The notes: a model not told the origin generated them from the letters alone. A DNA stretch of 63,525 nucleotides, filler included, from Lenisia limosa (GCA_001655205.1; 12 parts of 12 records of this genome joined end to end with filler, not necessarily neighbours in it); one strand, 5' to 3'; counted from the whole stretch's first letter, positions 2,756 to 36,097 are shown. A program made the numbers and translations.

Positions 2756-5700
2756 ATAAAATATAAACAATATGATATAGCATAATCAAAATACATCCAT
2801 ATCTTCATCAAGTGCATTGTGGAATGAAACAATCAGGCTGAGTGAAGCCCTCTAATTACAGTAGAAAGGAATATAATATTAGCATTGGATGACAACGGCT
2901 CCTTCAGTCGAAAAAACATAATTTTAATTTTAAAATATATTATACTGTCTTTTTTGGACAATAGTGATGATCTCCTCATCCCATTCCATCCTACCCGGAA
3001 GAAGCCAGATTTCCACAGGACGCATGCGACAACGAAGACGCCACCACCAGCTCCAAATGCCTGGTTCCTGAAGAGACGTCAAATAGAAAGAAGATGCAAA
3101 ATAATTGATATCCAGAAGTGGTGAAAAAGAGTGGATTCAAAATTGAGCTCTGGAACCATTTTGTATATTTCGAGAAATCCCCACCAGTTGAACGAGTCGT
3201 CTGTTTCTTGTTCAAGAGCAACTGAAGGGGTAAAATGGGGTTATGGAGAAATTGGAAACATAACACTTTTGAATAACAATAAGTGTGTGGAGAAATTCTT
3301 AACGAGGGATGAATCTAAGCGCCATATCAAGTCGAGGTAACGATAATATGTTGATAATAAGAAATCACATTATTCACCAGGGAAAAGGGAAACAAACAAA
3401 CAAACAAATACAAAATTGATTGTCAGCCCCCAATCCTCAATAATGGTCCAAACCAGGTTGCGGCGGGTTAGTCGTGTCCGTTCCAAGAACTGTCAACTCC
3501 TCGGTCCAAAACGCGGTTTCCGGATAGAGTTCACTGGCAATGCAAGTCGCGGCGCCACCGACCTGATATTGTCAATGATGACGAAAATGAAGGGTTTTGA
3601 TCGGATCATTTCGCTTTCACTGTTTGGGATCGGTGATTGGTATGCACAAAGAGCCACGGATCAAAGGGACAGTTCTGAGAAGACCCTTTCCTCCCCTCTT
3701 CCCTCCTACTTATGAAAGGGATAGCATGGGGAGTGTTGTGAACCAAAAACGCACACATAAAAACAAAACAGAAACAAAAACTATTGTAAAAACAGTCAAC
3801 ACCATCATTTCACATCTAACAAAAATATACAGTTTTACCCATTACCCCCACTGTGAAGACGCGATCCGCCTCGGTGGTGAAGTCAGAAATGGTCACAGAC
3901 AGTCGTTTGAATACCTGTTGGCCAACCTACGTCGATCAGGAAAGTGTTTGATGGAAGACAGTGAACCAGGAAATGAAAGGCGCTTGGGGGGTCATAATTC
4001 AGAAAGTGTTTTAAGGCTATGTTAGAAAACTACAGAATAAATATAGACGTACACTACATAGATCAATTCAAGTAACACTGTGATAGCTCATCATATTTTT
4101 ATTGATGTATTTTTGTGATCACCCACAAATATCTTCTGCACGTCGCATGACAACAAAAAGATGTCATCGTATTCTGAGAGGAAAGGCCACTCCTTGCTGG
4201 TAACTGGAAGCTGAAAGGCGGTAAGTAAACATATAATATGATTGTTTCAAATTGAATACAACACTAAAAGTAGGCGCTGAACTACGTATGCAATGAAATC
4301 CTACATGGGTACAATACTGTGATTGTTGCATGGATGTACATGAAAGAGCATAATATGATATTACATAGATGAGGAGAATACGATATACTGCCTTCCATGG
4401 TAGATGCTAAAGGTGTGTGTTTCGTGTAAGTTGAGTGGGAATAACTGTATGGGTTTTATATGGCGACGTCACTTATATTGTCCGTTGACTAATACTGCAC
4501 GCGAGAAATATAGGGTGATTATCATACATAAGTAGAATAGCATGAATCACAAGAGTGACGGGTGTATTTTGTCAGTGAAAATTCGACCAGAATTTAATCC
4601 TGGTCACTATGATTGAAATAAAAAATAAATCACACAATTGTTTCTCAACAGGTATGACGCTGTTGTCATCCCTTACCTGGTCAGAGGACGGGTTGGCAAT
4701 GAAGCTGCACCACGGGTGAAGAACCTGAAGGACATCAAAACTTGCCCATTTTAGGATATAAAAAGGCATTTTCACGATGGCTGGGGGATTTCTTGAATGA
4801 CAATGCTATCTTCATCAGACAATAACACGAAGGAAGCACGTCACATCACAGAAGTCCCAAAACTTTAATATGCCGGAAACTGTGTTACTTTCAAGAGCTT
4901 CTCTGTAGCTTCACAGCCCCCAAGGTCGGACCTGTAAATCGGTGACCACGGGTATGACGGCGGAGGCATTGCCCTGAAGATGGTCGACTGAAAGCTGGGC
5001 CGCGGACCCGCTGAAGTGCACAATCGCGTGGTCACTGTGAGTTAATGTAGAGCGATGACTTGCATAATCCCGTGATCACAGGAATGGGATGAACATAATC
5101 AAGGAATGACAATGACATGTTGAAGTGTGTAATGGCGTAATCACGACATACCACGAACTGAATAGCAATGAAGATTAAATACTTTTCGGATATTTTAATT
5201 TTTATATTATTGAAGTGTCCCACCAAGTACTTGTCGGGATGTCGAACTCATCAGTTTCGAAGTCGCCAAGGCCAAGGTCAGGGTTGATGCGCTTCGGGCC
5301 GTTCTGGAAGATTAAGCAGGAAAGACAAATAGACAACATAAATATTTCACAAGAAGTACTTAAAGAATAACGTTGGAGAAGATACGTAATACGAAAAAGA
5401 GCTTTAGATTGTGGAACACCATATCTGCTTCTCAATAACCGATGTTAGCGTTGTGCACTGACCTGGATGACAACAGAGTACTGGAGGGAAGTTGACGGAG
5501 GGACCTGTGACGCGTTAGGTAAAGAAAAGCTGAACAAGAGAAAAAGAGCGGAGTGATATTTTTTAGAACTGTTGGTTTGTATGTTTATGATGTAGCTATA
5601 TGATAGTATTTTTTTTTTATATAATTCATTACATTGCTATATTATTATTTATTCTTATTAGTTTACTATCAGGGCATTCGAGATACTATTTATAAGGACA

Positions 5701-8700: not shown

Positions 8701-11700
8701 GTAAATAGACTTCAGAGAGCAAGACAAATGAAAAATAATTCAAAGACCGAAAGCTATTTTGATGGTACACACGGAGTCGGTGGCGGCAGTATATGGTGGG
8801 ATCACTGGGGAACTCAGGAAACAGAAAAAATCACCCCCCACTCAAAGAAATCACCCCCCACTCAAAGTGAAAGAATTAACCTACGTGGCTGACCACCGTA
8901 ACAAGTAGCCCAACAGTAACCTACGTTCTCCAAGGATGGTGACATTTCCACCACTATGGGCTGGCGACACCTCACACGGCACCGACAGGAGCTGGGGGGT
9001 CAACAAATCGGAAATTAAACACAACGATAATTTTATGTCATAAATCTTCGGTGTGAAGTAATCAACTCCACATTACAGTCGAAGTGTGACTTATGAATAA
9101 TCATAAACAATGCACATCAATTTACGGATTTCTAGTGGATATCATAACATGTGTTATTATCTGGGTTACCTAACATCTCAATGTGAAGCGTGACAAATAC
9201 TATCATCCACGTAATATTTATTTGCTCAACATTGAAGACAGTGTTTGAAGCCAACCAGTTCAGTTTCAGGCTCCATGACAGGCATGATGCAGCTAATTTC
9301 ATTGGCAATGAATGTGCAGACTAAAACGATCAAAATGGTGGAGTTTGATGGATGTCACTAAAACGACCAAAGTGTAGGGGGAGGTGTGATGAAAGTGATC
9401 AAAATTTGACAGACGGTTCTGAAACAAAACAAAAACAGTCATCCATAATAAGGTATTAAACCTCCATATCTCAGAATATTACCGACCACGTATCATTTTA
9501 CAGACCAATGTGAAACCACCTCTCACTTTTACTGTTATTATCGTTGCCTCGGTAAAACTATGGTCCAGTCGGTTAAATTATTCGGTATTTGGTAATCAAA
9601 CTCAGCATACCTGGTGGATCTTGAGGGAGAAGATGGGGGAGGAGTTGCAATCTTGCATCTTCAATAGTTGCTGTCACCTGAGAGATGAGGAAAGAAAAAG
9701 CAAAACCCCAACAAAATGAATTCCGAATCACTGTTTCCACTCTCAATCAGTGCTTATTGTGCAAATTATCTTAATATAGAGGGGGAAGAGGTGGTACCAA
9801 GCAAAATGTGAATCGCTTGAGATATGGATGGCCTAGATCTGGGCTCCTTCTCTTTCTTTCTTGTTTCCCAGTGTGTTCTTCTGATTCTGATTCTTATGGG
9901 TCCAGAGAGTTTTTGGACAGGAAATATCCCTTGAAAAGTTGCTTCAAAACGCACACACATACACATCGAATCGACCTCTCGCTATAATGCTGCTCAACAC
10001 CCACATTATCGGGGAGTTGGATATTGATGGTCGGGGCACCAGGGGACCTTATAGCTGAGAAGGGGGTGTGGTGATTCGACACAGATGCGGCCAATGTGAA
10101 CTGTAGAGAGGCAAGGATCTGGAAAGCGGTAAGTGCAAAAGATTGAGAGTGACATCAAGCAGAGAAGAACATTTAGGTTGATGTTCAAGTGTTCTCTCGG
10201 TTCCATAGGGTTTTTCTGTCAATTTCCACATGAGTGGAAATGAGCAATCATGTACGAAAATGATGCCAAAGCGTGACATGATGGTGACCCAAACCTTTTC
10301 ATATGCGCTATTGGACACGAGGCTCTCGAAACGGAAGTCCGACTCCCATTTGACCTCAACGGTGTGGCTGGAAAGGTGAATACTATCCCCAGTGGATGTG
10401 TTTGTAGAATACAGCGGCTGGCAGCAGATTGGGAATGCATTAGTTGTGAAGAAAAGGGGATGTGTATTGTGAATACTGTGACCTGCATTCAATCACAAAT
10501 GTTTCCGAAAGGTGAACACGCTGAGATTTAAGTTACAGTGCACATAATACCCACTTTTGTCTGTTGTTACTTTGTGTGTCATCCGGCACACTGCTTTCGA
10601 CCCATCCGTCAATAGCCAAATTGCCGGTAAACTCATCAATTACCTTGAGAACAAATCTGAAGTGTGATTTAAAAATCAGAGAGATATACGGAATGATGTG
10701 AATCTACGTTGATATGTTGCTTCAGAAATGCAACACCCGCATTCATAATAATAAAAATAATAATAATGGAACAATTGTCCAGCAGGCCACCACCCACAAA
10801 GCGCGGTAATCCTCGGAAACATCCAGGGGTGGGATGGGGCAGGAATGGAGATCGTCAATATGCCTGAAAAGTCAGGACTGTAAAGAATGTTCAATGATGA
10901 ATGAAAGAATATATTAGCAAAATATAAAATGAAACGATGATCATCTCCTACACAACAAATATGAAAACGCTTGCATCCATATTAGACAATTTTCCATCAG
11001 GTGATCCCTACGTGCAATTGTCATTCGGCGTGGTAACGATGGAAATCTCAGGAGGAAGCTAAACCAGTGAGACAACAGAAAACAAAACAAAACGGTTGTG
11101 TGAAGGAACACGAGTGAGGAAATCACAATTGTGAAAAAAAAAAGAGATAATAACAACGAAATTATGTACTTTACATTTCGTACGGCCTCACTTGAGTCCA
11201 AAAGTAGGTCCATAACACTTGACCTACCTTGAGAACCACTCGTGGGTTGGGGTCTAAAGACGGCCCACTCGACGCCGCCACAAGACCCGCTGAGAAGACT
11301 TGGCCTAAGGGGGTTAATGGAGAATACTTGTTATGAAGGTACATGTATGTATCAGTGCTACAGAGATATGTGTGTGCTGAGGTGGGCTATGGACTTATAT
11401 TGCGTCAACGAGGTGGAACAGAAAATAAAAGGAGAAGAGTTAATGCAGAATAATAGGCTTGCTTTGAGTCAAACGAAAGTTTTTAGCCTATGTGTGTGTG
11501 TGTTGTCGTGGAGGGGGGGGGGGGGAANNNNNNNNNNNNNNNNNNNNNNNNNNNNNNNNNNNNNNNNNNNNNNNNNNNNNNNNTTATGGAGGGGTTAATT
11601 GATGAATCCAGTCAATTTTTGGACAGAAGTGAAGAAGATCCAACCCGAATAGAGAGTTCCCGGAGATGCGAAGAAGATGACCAGGTCAGTGAAGGGCGAC

Positions 11701-31202: not shown

Positions 31203-31344
31203 NNNNNNNNNNNNNNNNNNNNNNNNNNNNNNNNNNNNNNNNNNNNTTAATTAATTAANNNNNNNNNNNNNNNNNNNNNNNNNNNNNNNNNNNNNNNNNN
31301 NNCCCATCTAAATCAAGGGATAACATCATAACGGCACTGTCAAA

Positions 31345-34300
31345 ATGGGTGGCTGCTTCTCAGCGTTCATGGACACCTTCAATAGCACCTATGTGATACA
31401 GGGCAAAACTTATGTGGTATTCCGTTCTAGCTAATTCAAGGTCAAACAAAAGATTGCTGAAGGAGGGTTTTCCACCATCTTCCTTGTGAAAGACAAGGAC
31501 TCTGGAGAAAACTATGCTGTAAGTGGGGGTGGGGGGATTGGGGGATATTGCACGTTCTGTTGCGATAATGTCCCACTTCAAATTGTGAATATAAATTTCC
31601 AATTAATTGCAGGGGTCCTACTAATTTGCTCTTTGTTTTTAGGGCTTTATGCAGTTGATTGGAAATTAATTTTGAATCAGTCAATTATCACACGAGTGGA
31701 TATGAGGTATTAATCACTGCGTGGAAAATGACGGTTTACACGTGTGAAAATGATGAAAAAAAAGGATAAAACTATGGTCCTAAGAAAAAGACTTCACTTA
31801 GGTCCGAAAAAGATTGGTGAACTATCGCAAATACATATCATATATATAATATATATCTAGATATATCGGTATATAAAAATTATATTATTATTACCTATAC
31901 AGTGACGGGATAAGTCGTGCCGATTTTCCTTGGGAAACCACATTGCAAATCGGTTAAGACTTGTCCTAGTCATATATATATCACCCGCAATAAAATTGCT
32001 ACTCTGGAGGGGATTTTATCATTTTCAAACGTGTGAACTGTCATTTTCCACGCAGTGATTAATACCTCATATCCACTCGTGTGATAATTGACTGATTCAA
32101 AATTAATTTCTAATCAACTGCATAAAGCCCTAAAACAATAGAGCAAATTAGCAGGACCCCTGCAATTAATTGGAAATTTATATTCACAATTTGAAGTGGG
32201 ACATAATTGCAGCAGAACTAATGGGATGCTGTGTTGGGCTTTGTTTGTGTTTTCAATTTTCGTGAGTTTCTAGCCAACTGAGTTGATTATTTTCATAAAT
32301 TTTCCATTTTTACTCCCTCAGTTGATTTTTTATTTGTTTCATTATATTTCCAGTTTTACACCCCTAGGTGAAGCGAATTATTTGCTTCGAAGATGATCAA
32401 TTGGAACATGCTAAGAAAGAAATCCGAATGCACAACCTTTTCAAGAGTGACTACATCGTACCCCTAGGTTTTGTTTTATTCCTTCACCAGTTGCTGATGA
32501 AATGGCGTCCTCAAAAGTCCACGAGGGAGCAACGGAAGTTCTTCTACTGTATAAGTACTACATGGTAAGGTTAAGGGTCATCCACCATAAGTTGATAAGT
32601 TGATTTTGGGTTCTTTGTTTCAAAAATTTCCATTTTACCCGTGTTGCAGAAGCGGCTGGCCTGGGCTTTGTTTGGTTTGTTGTTATCAACCCTCGTGTGT
32701 NNNNNNNNNNNNNNNNNNNNNNNNNNNNNNNNNNNNNNNNNNNNNNNNNNNNNNNNNNNNNNNNNNNNNNNNNNNNNNNNNNNNNNNNNNNNNNNNNNNN
32801 NNNAAGGAAGGTGACATGATGACCGAAGGGGAGGTCCTTCATTATTTCCTTGGTAGGGTGGGGGTGACATGATGACTGAGGGGAAGGAAGATCCTTCATG
32901 TTTCCTTGGTAGGGAAGGGAAGAAAAAACTGTTTCGAATGGGGAAACAAAAGGGGGATGAGTGGAGTGTAACAAGTGCTGCATGACGTTGGTTGACAACA
33001 CACAAGGGTTGATAACAAAAAAACAAAGTCGCTTCTGCAGCCCGGTATCCCATCGCTCCAGCGTGCAGTAAACAGAGAAAACCTCCACTCATTTAAATAT
33101 TCCTGGGGGGAGTGGAGTAAAACAGTTGGAGAGGAGTGTATTATAATGACCGGGGCTTCCCTGCGCTCCCCCAGGAATATTTAAATGAGTGGAGGTTTTC
33201 TCTCTTTACTGCACGCTGGAGCGATGGGATACTGGGCTGCAGAAGCGACTTTGTTTTTTTTTATCAACCCTTGTGTGTTGTCAACCAACAGAGTTGATTT
33301 TGGGCTTTTTTTGTTTCATCAATTTTTCAGTTTAACCTCCCTCCCCAGGAATATTAAAAGGAGTGGAGGTTTTCCATCGGCGGGAGGACCCTTATTGTCA
33401 CCGGGACCTGAAACCGCATAATGTGATGTTAGGTGTGGGGGGTATAACTAGGGCTTCACTTCGGTTCGAAAAGAGTAAATTTGTCGATAAATCCTCGAAA
33501 ACTTTCGATATTTTACTGGGATTTTTCAAACCGAAGTGAAGCCCTTGGTATAATGTGTGTTGTTTAGTGTAACAAATGTAAATAGGGGTAAAGTGTGATA
33601 TAAATAGGAAGCCGTCCACTCCATCAGAAATACTGTTTGACTGGAAGGCTGAATCTTTCAACTGGCTTATCAAGTAGAAACGGACTATCGCTAACTTCCA
33701 ATCGAAATAAGTCCTTAAGGCCAATGGTGTAGAAAAAATGCCAGGCTTTCAGGCTGAAAAAAGCTGGCTGGCAGAAAGGCAGAAAAAGTCACAGGCGAAT
33801 AATAATGGGATGACATTTTTAAAGCTTCTCTAGTCATGGTAGTGGTGTACAAGGTCAATTGTTGCAACTACGGACGTTTTATTTTAAAAAAATTACAAAA
33901 TACAAGGTCAATTTTTGCAACTACAAACGTTTTTCAAAAATGAAACAATTCTAACTTTCTGTCAAAATAAGTCCTTAAGGCCGATATTGTGCAGAAATAA
34001 TGCCAGGCTTTCAGGCTGAAAAAGGCTGAATCCGTTCTCACAGAAAGGCTGAAATCTTCATAGGCGGATCTAAATGTGACCAAAACATATCATATGATAT
34101 GTACAAAAGTAAAGAAAGAGTCCAGTAATAGTCCCAACGAAACAAATCGCTAGATTTGATTGTGACTTTATCAGCCTTTCTGCCAACCAGCTTTGTTCAG
34201 CCCTGAAAGCCTGGCATTATTTCTGCACAATATCGACCTTAAGGACTTATTGTGACTGGAAGTTAGGCTTGTCTAAAAATGGGTTGTATTTTTAAAAACG

Positions 34301-36097
34301 TCTGTAGTTGCAAACATTGACCAGTTCACTTTTATTTTGTAATTATGCTCATAAAATAATACAATACTAACGACAGACACAAACAAAGCCTTCCCAGTTT
34401 TATTTGATTGTGACGGTTTTTAACCTTTCTGCCATCCAACCTATAATTTAGACAGGAAGTTAGGCAAGCAGTTATATGCAGACATGTTGATAGTCCGTTT
34501 CTACCTGATATCAGTTGCAGGATTCAACCTTTCAGTCAAACTGTATCAATGATGCTGTCCCCCCTCCCTCCCTCCTCTCCTTGTTAACCTCTTAAGAAGC
34601 GACTGGCCTGGGCTTAGTTTATTGTTTTGTTTTCACCCTCATGTGTTTCCCAAAAACTTGCCAGCAGAGTTGATTTTAGGCTTTTTTGATTCATAAATGA
34701 TTTAACTCTCGAAATTTCCTTCGTTTTACTCCCCCCTCCCACCAGACGACCCAATGAGTGATGAGGCGTTTTCGTTCTACCACCCCCTGCTGACTGATCT
34801 TGGATCGGCCATGCCGGCACGGGTTATTGTGGGGGGGGGGGATTGGGGATGCAGGGTTCAAAAAAGACTGATGAATTATCGATATTTATCGAAGATTTTT
34901 CGAGAAATTCAGTCTTTTTTAGAACCGAAGTGAAGCCCGAGAGGGATGGAGTTGAGAGTTATTGTGGAGGGTGATGAGCATATTGTGTGTGTGTGTGAGT
35001 GTGTAGATTCTAAAGCATGATTATATCTTGGAAAATTAATAATCGAATATCTTTTGTAAGCGTGATATTGTGGACGGCTTTGGCCGCTCATCTCCACATT
35101 TACAATGGTTTTGTTATTTTCCAGGTTTCTTCGAGGAAAGATGCGTTGGCAATTCAAGAAGATGCTCATGAGGTGTGAAGGGCCCCAATCTGATGGTTCT
35201 TAATTGGTTAACTCTCAATACTTTGCTGGGATGTTTATTTCAATAATTTGAGATGTTTATTTCTCTAATATGAGATGTTTAATTCTCTAATATGGTTGTG
35301 TTTGCTCATAAAGATTCTCAATGTCTTCATCTTTCTTGCTTTCTGCACTTTTTATGTCCATATAATACTGCATATAATCCTTGTGTTTTTCTCAAATGCT
35401 TGCCAACAGAGTTGATTCAAAGTTTTTGTTTCATTCATTTTCATTTTTACTCTCTCCCCCCCCCCCCCCCNNNNNNNNNNNNNNNNNNNNNNNNNNNNNN
35501 NNNNNNNNNNNNNNNNNNNNNNNNNNNNNNNTATTTATCAACAAGATTTATCCTCCCCTCCCCAGATTTTGGGCCTTTTTGTTTTGTTAATTTTTATTTC
35601 CTTCGTTTTACGTACGCTGGAGTGATGGGATGTGGTGCTGTCGAAGCGACTGGTCTGGGCTTTTTTTTTTTTGTAATAAACGCTCGTGNNNNNNNNNNGA
35701 TTTTGGGCTTTTTTATGTTTCATAAATTTACCAGTTTTACTCCCCCCCCTCCCCCAGCACGTGACCGCAGCCTACCGGCCGCCGGAGCTTTGGAATGTTG
35801 CTGCTGAAACGGTCCTATCGGAAAAAGTGGACATCTGGGTATGGGGGTGTTTCTTTTTCATTGATTTGTCAATTTCATGGATTATTCATGTATTTTCCTG
35901 GACAAAAACAGTAGTTTTCAGGAAAATGATTTTTCCCTCTTAATTGCTAGGGCTCCGGGCAATTAATTTTTTGAAGCAATTTATTCTCAACATTTGAAAT
36001 AAAAGTGTCTGAAATTGTTTTCCCCATTACAATTGGTCCTAATTTTTCTTGCTTAGGCTCTTGGGTGTGTGCTCTACGAACTAGCTTTCTTGCAACC
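31345..36097 (+). CDS. STK16: STK16/MPSK1 (NAK family) Ser/Thr kinase, 3' truncated by a gap
   Basis: The N-terminus MGGCFS fits a myristoylation/palmitoylation signal. Kinase motifs: IAEGGFSTIFLV, YAVKRIIC, KKEIRMHNLF, HRDLKPHNVML (33349-33432), LTDLGSA (34746-34822; DLG is typical of STK16), TAAYRPPELW...KVDIW (35758-35838), ALGCVLYELAF (36057-36097). Confidence 0.92.
31568..32204. mobile_element. Foldback-like element with ~190-bp inverted arms in STK16 intron 2
   Basis: 31568-31760 is the near-perfect reverse complement of 32013-32204. The loop holds a family D MITE and a partial family A MITE. A partial arm copy lies at ~58518-58590. Confidence 0.8.
33210..33348 (+). repeat. Module C: ~140-150-bp dispersed repeat ending exactly at a functional 3' splice site (representative)
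   Basis: Consensus ACGCTGGAGTGATGGGATGC.GTGCTGCAGAAGCGACTGGCCTGGGC(T)n..ATCAACCCTTGTGT..CAGCCAACAGAGTTGATTTTGGGC(T)nGTTTCA..TTTTACT(C)nAG. About 14 full or partial copies: 24229, 29516-29664(-), 32205-32367, 32590-32700, 34595-34745, 35370-35470, 35612-35757, 38203, 40611-40762(-), 40835-40895(-), 56628-56770(-), 63470. Confidence 0.88.
33449..33546. mobile_element. hAT-type MITE, family A (~85-100 bp); representative of about 20 copies
   Basis: TIR TAGGGCTTCACTTCGGTTCG...CGAACCGAAGTGAAGCCCTA; 8-bp TSD ggtataac/ggtataat. Other copies lie near 900, 21425, 21755, 22915, 23152, 24871, 25118, 30786, 31796, 34852, 36477, 37546, 38107, 39043, 57830, 58285, 59114, 59332 and 62782. A subfamily starts TAGGGCTTCCCT. 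Confidence 0.88.
33622..34554. mobile_element. Modular foldback-like element (~930 bp) in an STK16 intron
   Basis: Imperfect ~65-bp terminal inverted repeats (33622-33690 vs 34490-34554). An internal module AAATAAGTCCTTAAGGCC...ATGCCAGGCTTTCAGGCTGAAAAA occurs twice forward (~33705, ~33965) and once inverted (~34185-34255). No ORF. Confidence 0.72.

Follow-up and report, generated by a model that had tools for sequence, protein, structure and literature searches.

The gain of introns and their lengthening have long posed an unsolved problem. It is raised again by a stretch of 63,525 nucleotides (nt) of DNA from Lenisia limosa (GCA_001655205.1; 12 records joined with filler), here called the window, in which introns of a gene for an STK16-like kinase share their 3' ends with one another and with introns of unrelated genes. 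The part considered here, the piece, runs from 31345 to 36097. A preliminary description had noted that a repeat, module C, ends in TTTTAC, a run of C and AG, and that this AG is the acceptor of several introns, and had proposed a mobile element that is targeted to acceptors and extends the 3' ends of introns. The observation is real and larger than first reported: in the gap-filled model of the STK16-like gene, seven introns out of 11 end in the repeat, and it stands at six acceptors of a gene with EGF domains on another contig, L002.

Introns of the STK16-like gene and their acceptors

Three gaps interrupt the gene in the window. A second assembly of the locus without any N, contig L001 (ENA ERZ3820729 NODE_1665, 10,170 nt), was reached through an open reading frame (ORF) of a public assembly (window 33185-33421) that crosses one copy of the repeat. 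Window positions 32040-32700 and 32804-35469 align to L001 with 100% identity, and L001 extends 6 kb beyond window position 36097. It is most likely an independent assembly of the same reads and thus not independent data, so that it checks the assembly and not the biology. All three gaps are filled by L001. Gap 1 (32701-32803) measures 122 nt there and contains the remainder of a repeat copy ending in TTTTACTCT(C)19, an acceptor 17 nt downstream of that end, and then the first 36 nt of an exon that begins RGSLFDRISWLKKEGD and was hidden from the preliminary description. Gap 2 (35471-35531) is 46 nt long and all intron, while gap 3 (35689-35698) is 20 nt long and interior to a single unbroken repeat copy. 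Each gap begins at or near a homopolymer or low-complexity repeat sequence, and homopolymers of G or C are the likely cause of the gaps.

With the gaps filled, the 12 exons of the model give a coding sequence of 915 nt without a stop, and the predicted product of 304 amino acids contains the kinase motifs GGFS, VKRI, HRDLKPHN, DLGS, and DIWALGCVLYE. The best match among solved structures is human STK16 (2BUJ) for the exons starting at 32368 and 35758, each searched separately, and both alignments begin at the acceptor, from the first residues of the exon. The exon starting at 33349, which encodes HRDLKPHN, matches positions 107-131 of the Pkinase profile. Pfam searches with single exons mostly gave no match, as the exons are short and fast-evolving, and a homologue search with the ORF of exon 3 gave none. 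The 304-residue frame together with the STK16 and Pkinase matches makes the AGs at 32367, 33348, 34745, and 35757 required acceptors, in agreement with the preliminary description. Three further acceptors of the gene are repeat ends, namely L001 747, which is masked by gap 1 in the window, and L001 4464 and 4955, which lie outside the piece.

The introns of this gene without the repeat are two tiny ones and the mid-sized 34823-35124 and 35839-36056. The tiny GT-AG introns, 31417-31440 (24 nt) and 32468-32490 (23 nt), are demanded by both the frame and the STK16 alignment, and they share the gene with introns of 0.3-1.3 kb. Among animals, introns shorter than 30 nt have been reported only in myxobolid myxozoans and dicyemids (PMC13644364; PMC6736024; PMC6543705). 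Both genes modelled here, STK16-like and calcium-binding EGF, are of animal type, and by intron length the host would fall with one of these two groups; a salp, considered on account of G-quadruplex reports (PMC10686999), was discarded for this reason.

Anatomy, number and orientation of the repeat

Eight repeat-bearing ORFs were looked up, and 8/8 lay in one and the same assembly, which was the source of a wider sample of eight contigs with a total of 99.6 kb (L001, L002, and L123-L128 among the labels). In the nhmmer consensus the unit of module C is about 140 nt long, starts with (T)ACGCTGGAG and ends with ..AAATTTTCCAATTTTAC; unit starts could also be read in about 60 further copies seen as ORFs. 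Beyond the unit end stand 7-19 C, sometimes interrupted, and then AG, so the terminus had been described correctly. TTTTAC fits the metazoan branch-site consensus yUnAy, and we take this motif as a predicted branch point. As a pure C-run contains no AG, the first AG beyond the run would be well placed as an acceptor.

The profile found 46 copies in the 99.6 kb, distributed over all eight contigs, with E-values down to 1e-43 for those in the piece. Of the 46 copies, 43 extend to the 3' end of the model, at or past position 150, whereas their starts are spread over positions 4-125, which bears out the earlier observation of a common 3' end with differing 5' starts. When the repeat was translated in its open frame, its profile matched at least 519 ORF clusters at E ≤ 1e-3, 215 of them at E ≤ 1e-10, in a library of 1.8 billion representatives. 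The repeat is dispersed across unrelated genes. An 18-mer of the repeat hit 120 loci in metagenome contigs, none with extended similarity, and these were regarded as chance matches; a 22-mer had no match in viral contigs and genome contigs.

A repeat that is not mobile at all could in principle have spread by local duplication or gene conversion among introns, or could be an assembly artefact of low-complexity ends. The locus does contain local tandem and inverted duplications (32810-32914 and 32987-33289), and the probable homopolymer origin of the assembly gaps would fit an artefact. Nevertheless, copies with 140 nt of homology and E-values down to 1e-50 lie on at least eight contigs and in unrelated genes, hundreds more are visible as ORFs, and the two assemblies agree base for base, so that this explanation can be regarded as refuted for practical purposes.

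The copies stand at acceptors. Three lead straight into the next copy, and the remaining 40 could be examined for their flank. The median gap between the aligned copy end and the next AG is 3 nt, and an exon-like flank (60 nt after the AG with a GC content of at least 0.47; known exons have 48% GC and introns 39%) follows in 31 of the 40 copies, compared with 28% of all AG sites (p = 1.7e-10). Exceptions are found at L126 2804(-), L127 2103(-), L127 2971(+), and L125 6791(+). In the EGF-domain gene, on the plus strand of L002, the repeat terminus stands in sense orientation right before six acceptors, and at one of these a calcium-binding EGF signature is whole only if splicing links exon 5344-5422 with the exon after the repeat AG at 5687. 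Judged by reading frame and signature, the AG of the repeat appears to serve as the acceptor in both the STK16-like and the EGF-domain gene, and the repeat supplies the 3' end of well over half of the introns of these two unrelated genes.

The strand is known independently for these two genes only, STK16-like on L001 and EGF-domain on L002, and gene strands on L123-L128 were deduced from composition alone. In the two genes, about 15 sense copies of module C and one sense copy of a sister family, F2, are opposed by one antisense copy. The preliminary description had all copies in sense except for one local inversion, which holds for the piece: the exception is one arm of a palindrome, 32987-33112, which pairs with 33165-33289 with 97-98% complementarity. 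The palindrome, 32987-33289, arose by a later inverted duplication and explains the sole antisense copy in the piece.

F2 is about 110 nt long, contains GGTTCGTGATTAGTACCTTTAC and has a different body, and it shares with module C only the last ~20 nt and the C-run. The common terminus of both families reads AAATTTCC..TTTTAC, followed by the C-run. By analogy, two families with one terminus and one tail may resemble SINE (short interspersed nuclear element) families that use one partner.

Two further features of the copies were observed. In some of them (proteins P0003, P0019, P0027, and P0088) a short segment from the 5' part of the unit, about 27-30 nt and translated as AGVMGCGAAE, is repeated internally in tandem, up to four times. 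On L127, between 600 and 9592, copies are interleaved on both strands (+ at 659, 2337, 2971, 5641, and 8959; - at 2103, 7230, 7919, and 9592); they mostly precede exon-like sequence, which would need packed or nested genes on opposite strands. The positions of the features are collected in Table 1.

Table 1. Positions of repeat copies, gene parts and other elements, in window coordinates unless a contig is named.
Feature	Position	Strand	Basis
Repeat copy with internal deletions in intron 2; older acceptor-like end TTTTTAC-TCCCTC-AG	32211-32321	+	nhmmer; L001 172-279, model 12-154
Short 5'-truncated copy directly after the preceding AG; its end TTTTAC-ACCCCT-AG is the exon 3 acceptor	32322-32367	+	frame needs AG 32366-32367
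Partial copy (3' part, ends TTTTAC), head-to-tail with a second copy entering gap 1	32590-32700	+	nhmmer; L001 551-601, 602-732
Sole antisense copy of the piece, the left palindrome arm, also with an inverted copy of the exon start	32987-33112	-	inverted repeats I2/I8, 97-98% complementary; nhmmer, L001 1050-967
Duplicate of the old acceptor (CCCCCAG) and first 26 nt of the exon, now intronic, just upstream of a repeat copy	33165-33200	+	41 columns vs 33339-33374
Full-length copy whose end is the acceptor of the HRDLKPHN exon	33208-33348	+	nhmmer E 1e-36, model 6-160; frame; Pkinase match
5'-truncated copy (from model position 35) ending at the exon 7 acceptor; C-rich tract just upstream	34591-34745	+	nhmmer
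Internal older copy, end TTTTTAC-TCTCT-(C)14-TCAG (read via the gap 2 fill)	35376-35470	+	nhmmer
About 1.3 units: 47-nt 3' part right after an older CCCCAG, then GT, then a full unit; end TTTTAC-T(C)8T(C)5-AG is the acceptor of the exon starting at 35758	35566-35757	+	nhmmer; L001 gap fill
G-rich start of intron 2: GTAAGT, then G-runs	31519-31553	+	sequence reading
STK16-like kinase gene, first nine of 12 exons	31303-36097	+	GT-AG introns, splice model
STK16-like exons	31345-31416, 31441-31518, 32368-32467, 32491-32564, (gap 1)-32852, 33349-33432, 34746-34822, 35125-35172, 35758-35838, 36057 onward	+	splice model
F2 copies in front of acceptors	L125 6940-7000; L127 100-157, 2290-2336; L128 30-89; L002 6050-6104		
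Hairpin miniature inverted-repeat transposable element (MITE), ~105 nt, inverted ends TAGGGCTTCACTTCGGTTCGAAAA, ~8-bp flanking duplications, hAT-like	33446-33549, 34853-34938; L001 4103-4198; L002 626-746, 2955-3060, 4170-4255, 4866-4965, 5445-5525		

Junctions and the route of insertion

The 5' junctions of the copies show what had stood at the insertion sites. Clean stacking, in which the (C)n-AG of an older copy abuts the first base of a truncated copy, was seen at window 32321/32322 and 35565/35566 and at L128 ~107/108 and ~578/579; it is less clean at L001 ~4437 and L126 ~10331, and at the latter the upstream GAG may be unit sequence. In total, at least six introns show a younger truncated copy right behind an older (C)n-AG end. 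Within the 35 nt before the copy start, a C-run was present in 12 of 45 copies, compared with 5% expected (p = 1.4e-6), and a G-run in 8 of 45 (p = 0.0016). Among the copies seen as ORFs, about one-sixth have proline runs, which correspond to C-runs, directly before the unit start. The copy 33208-33348 is flanked by a direct duplication of 41 alignment columns, which includes CCCCAG and the initial 26 nt of the exon, and none of 2000 shuffles scored as high. As this duplication holds the old acceptor, the intron existed before the copy arrived, and the insertion moved the working acceptor ~174 nt downstream.

Two other candidates at such junctions were rejected. The sequence after the internal acceptor at gap 2 was considered as a decayed start of the exon at 35758 and dropped (p = 0.275), and a second flanking duplication at L001 4301 (p = 0.013) is better explained by similarity to the F2 terminus. 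A separate tandem duplication, 32810-32914 (period 56, ~83% identity), comprises the last 43 nt of an exon and a GTAGGG donor, its second copy being intronic and with an indel; the intron after 32852 thus has duplicates of an exon boundary at both ends.

Polarity, a 3' homopolymer, stacking, a long duplication together with C-run flanks, and two families with one terminus make up the classical signature of target-primed retroposition. The explanation that we favour, and to which we give about an even chance, is a non-autonomous, retroposon-like element that integrates at the C-tracts of acceptors and persists only in sense orientation because it restores branch site, C-tract, and AG. Module C and at least one sister family, F2, would be non-autonomous mobile elements that integrate into tracts of C or G, above all the C-tracts of acceptors as the probable target, by polar, target-primed copying, presumably of an RNA intermediate. 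Each insertion would bring the branch-site-like TTTTAC directly before a C-run and AG, so that the host intron would remain spliceable and gain 40-200 nt at its 3' end. The former (C)n-AG, sometimes with a piece of exon, would be left behind as intron, and repeated hits would build head-to-tail stacks. Sense copies at acceptors would persist, and antisense or misplaced ones would be rare, either through the mechanism or through the separation of branch site and acceptor. A sense insertion renews all three signals and an antisense one separates them, so selection alone can explain the orientation bias, and we infer that it has a role in it. Overall, the junctions suggest that introns grow from their 3' ends by repeated insertion at the acceptor. 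The extension that the preliminary description had proposed is thus supported by the stacked older acceptors and the 41-column duplication; less firm is its view that the acceptor itself, and not a homopolymer of C or G, is the target. Nothing points to reverse splicing, one of the two routes it had offered.

Several observations weigh against this explanation. Many full copies are preceded by a partial 3' unit without a C-run, a pattern not expected from simple target-primed insertion, and a scan of all copies for flanking duplications gave no convincing case besides 33208-33348. The upstream C-run flanks are indistinguishable from the tails of older copies. Although G-runs are frequent at donors, only a few antisense copies, all short, lie next to them. 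To our knowledge, a poly-C tail has not been described for retroposons. Neither the 99.6 kb nor the 10 longest ORF hits yielded an ORF for a reverse transcriptase, endonuclease, or transposase, and the same holds for the partner with the same 3' end that the preliminary description had envisaged. ARAGORN found no transfer RNA (tRNA), that is, no source of the RNA polymerase III type, and Rfam at E ≤ 1 assigned no family to the copies, neither a 5S or 7SL origin nor a ribozyme, giving only hairpin-type chance matches elsewhere in the piece. Finally, the contigs were picked through repeat-containing ORFs, an ascertainment that favours exon-adjacent copies; among the 24 copies not used to pick contigs, 19-20 still have an exon-like flank by manual count.

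The partial units deserve attention in their own right, as they bear on a different kind of copying. Each is 14-75 nt long, ends in TTTAC and is joined to the unit start via 0-4 nt that differ between copies. Reverse-transcribed copies of an excised intron RNA, in which unit, C-run, and AG are one source intron whose (C)n-AG-OH end primes at the complementary strand of other acceptors, would account for the fact that copies end exactly at the AG by the exon and that younger copies begin exactly after an older AG. In the same reading, copies longer than one unit would stem from copying that went round a lariat or circle, sometimes more than once, with the join at the branch-site motif. We give this reading only a slim chance. 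Copies of 1.1-1.5 units have their junction right after TTTAC, with an insert (GT, GTAT, G, TGT, TGC, none, T) that varies as though it were formed afresh in each copy. A few copies have GTACGC at the unit start, and intron circles that form after splicing exist and have been linked to transposition (PMC11146597). On the other hand, read-through of a 2'-5' branch should drop the C that follows the putative branch A, yet this C is never missing, and the trimmed circles of yeast retain a tail of at least 15 nt (PMC11146597). The majority of units begin with TACGCTGG and lack a G before it, a stand-alone source intron was not seen, and F2 termini can also stand upstream of the junction. If the reading were true, 3' ends would transpose from acceptor to acceptor, which would be the spliceosomal analogue of retromobility in group II introns, and intron growth would have a concrete mechanism in a genome otherwise full of ~25-nt introns.

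The C-runs on both sides of many full-length copies could also be read as a duplicated homopolymer target. In that case module C would be a MITE-like DNA transposon that prefers poly-C or poly-G, with the sense and acceptor pattern due purely to selection and the truncation to abortive repair or deletion. The genome hosts active-looking MITEs, and the search of the 99.6 kb and of the long ORF hits for a reverse transcriptase was negative, both of which would suit a DNA transposon. The objection that the repeat might be an ordinary MITE was examined at its ends: the unit has no terminal inverted repeats, and no more than ~7 scattered bases are common to the 5' end ACGCTGGAG and the complemented 3' end. 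Moreover, decay usually keeps both ends of such elements, whereas here the 3' end is kept almost throughout and the 5' end is lost at any point, and the duplication length is not fixed, since the clear one has 41 columns and the others would be much shorter. A DNA transposon is therefore, in our estimation, quite improbable.

The same junctions can be viewed from the donor side. Most of the non-tiny introns start with GT and a G-run, with or without the repeat; besides intron 2, such starts are found in the introns at 32853, 33433, 34823, and 35839. A classical Introner would be an element with GT-(G)n at one end and (C)n-AG at the other, whose insertion made each repeat-bearing intron in its entirety, the 5' part being later lost or broken by nested transposons. 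It would explain why the starts and the C-run ends resemble inverted termini and why, in 8 of 45 cases, a G-run stands right against a truncated copy. Short introns of only a G-run and part of a unit exist (e.g., L126 ~10529-10657), nested MITE and foldback insertions are evident, and Introners are known from many transposon classes, non-LTR (long terminal repeat) elements included (PMC12130899). Yet the intron 5' ends are non-homologous apart from the G-runs, as had been stated before, and introns without the repeat also begin with G-runs. Of about 12 full-length copies, none starts at an exon boundary, each being preceded by a partial unit, a C-run, or unrelated intron. The stacked older acceptors and the duplicated acceptor and exon start indicate that the intron predates the copy, and the similarity stops short of the 5' boundary, which the definition of an Introner requires (PMC12130899). 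We consider this origin unlikely.

Homopolymers and other elements form the background of these introns. Runs of C or G of at least 7 are very dense, with 103 of them in the 99.6 kb; examples in the window are 31524-31546, 34830-34841, and 35456-35470, with G-runs after donors and C-runs before acceptors. Every long C-run in the two genes that were modelled accompanies the repeat terminus, while elsewhere some acceptors read A-(C)10-14-AG without a recognisable repeat. In the predicted fold of the intron L001 4079-4464, G14 pairs with C14 in a loop that closes the intron (z = -2.6), and G- and C-runs may bring the splice sites together in this way, as a zipper of the intron ends. The hairpin MITE of Table 1 very often stands just after the GT-(G)n start of an intron. 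Rfam also matched MIR319 at 33443-33552, with a score well under the gathering threshold, and this match corresponds to the hairpin of the MITE. Nested in intron 2, between the G-rich start and the repeat, lies a foldback element of 665 nt (31554-32218; arms of 205 nt, 94% complementary), and the 1.3-kb intron holds a composite foldback of ~930 nt (33600-34560) with the nested long inverted repeats I3, I4, I6, I7, I9, and I18.

Comparison with known systems

Current genome-wide screens recognise only whole-intron elements, so that a family sharing only the 3' boundary would be discarded as a secondary insertion. If the behaviour of module C were confirmed genome-wide, it would define a transposon niche by a splice signal and provide a route by which introns lengthen while the gene is left unbroken, and it would explain how introns of 23-24 nt and of kilobase size occur within one gene.

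Introners are known from Micromonas, Aureococcus, fungi, and dinoflagellates (surveyed in PMC9860276 and PMC12130899), and in screening they are defined by copies that are whole introns, with similarity to both exon-intron boundaries (PMC12130899). Module C is like them in being multi-copy and non-autonomous, in carrying functional splice signals, in lying in sense within genes and in occupying many introns of a single gene; its AG is needed for the 304-residue frame and for the EGF signature. It differs in that only the 3' boundary is shared, the 5' parts of the introns being different apart from G-runs and no full copy starting at an exon, and in the 5' truncation and stacking of its copies, of which at least one entered a pre-existing intron.

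A fixed pair of inverted termini and a duplication of fixed length, which would mark a MITE, are absent from module C, whose flanking repeats are lacking or unequal. The hairpin element 33446-33549, which is not module C, has both terminal inverted repeats and a target duplication of fixed length.

In SINE-type and site-specific non-LTR elements, such as those of telomeres, ribosomal DNA, and microsatellites, the 3' end of the RNA anneals to a repetitive target. Module C resembles SINE-type retroposons in its shared 3' end and variable 5' truncation (43/46 copies, starts 4-125), its 3' homopolymer, its possibly variable duplications, its families with one terminus and its repeated hits at the same kind of site. 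Unlike them, it has poly-C beside an acceptor as tail and target, many of its copies exceed one unit, and ARAGORN and Rfam detected neither an RNA polymerase III promoter nor a tRNA, 5S, or 7SL origin.

Penelope-like elements insert as partial tandems ('pseudo-LTR'), and metazoan retrozymes are comparable. The full unit preceded by a variably 5'-truncated tandem unit and the occasional inverted partials beside direct copies are features of module C that recall these systems. In contrast, Rfam detected no hammerhead ribozyme in the copies, and no ORF for a reverse transcriptase or GIY-YIG protein was seen.

Splice sites derived from transposons are a wider class: antisense Alu elements give a pyrimidine tract and AG to new exons, and the tunicate Fritillaria has introns derived from MITEs. 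Module C agrees with such cases in that a repeat provides the signals of a 3' splice site. Whereas those lead to an extra exon or to a non-canonical intron, module C takes the place of the functional 3' end in canonical GT-AG introns, and it does so systematically and in one orientation.

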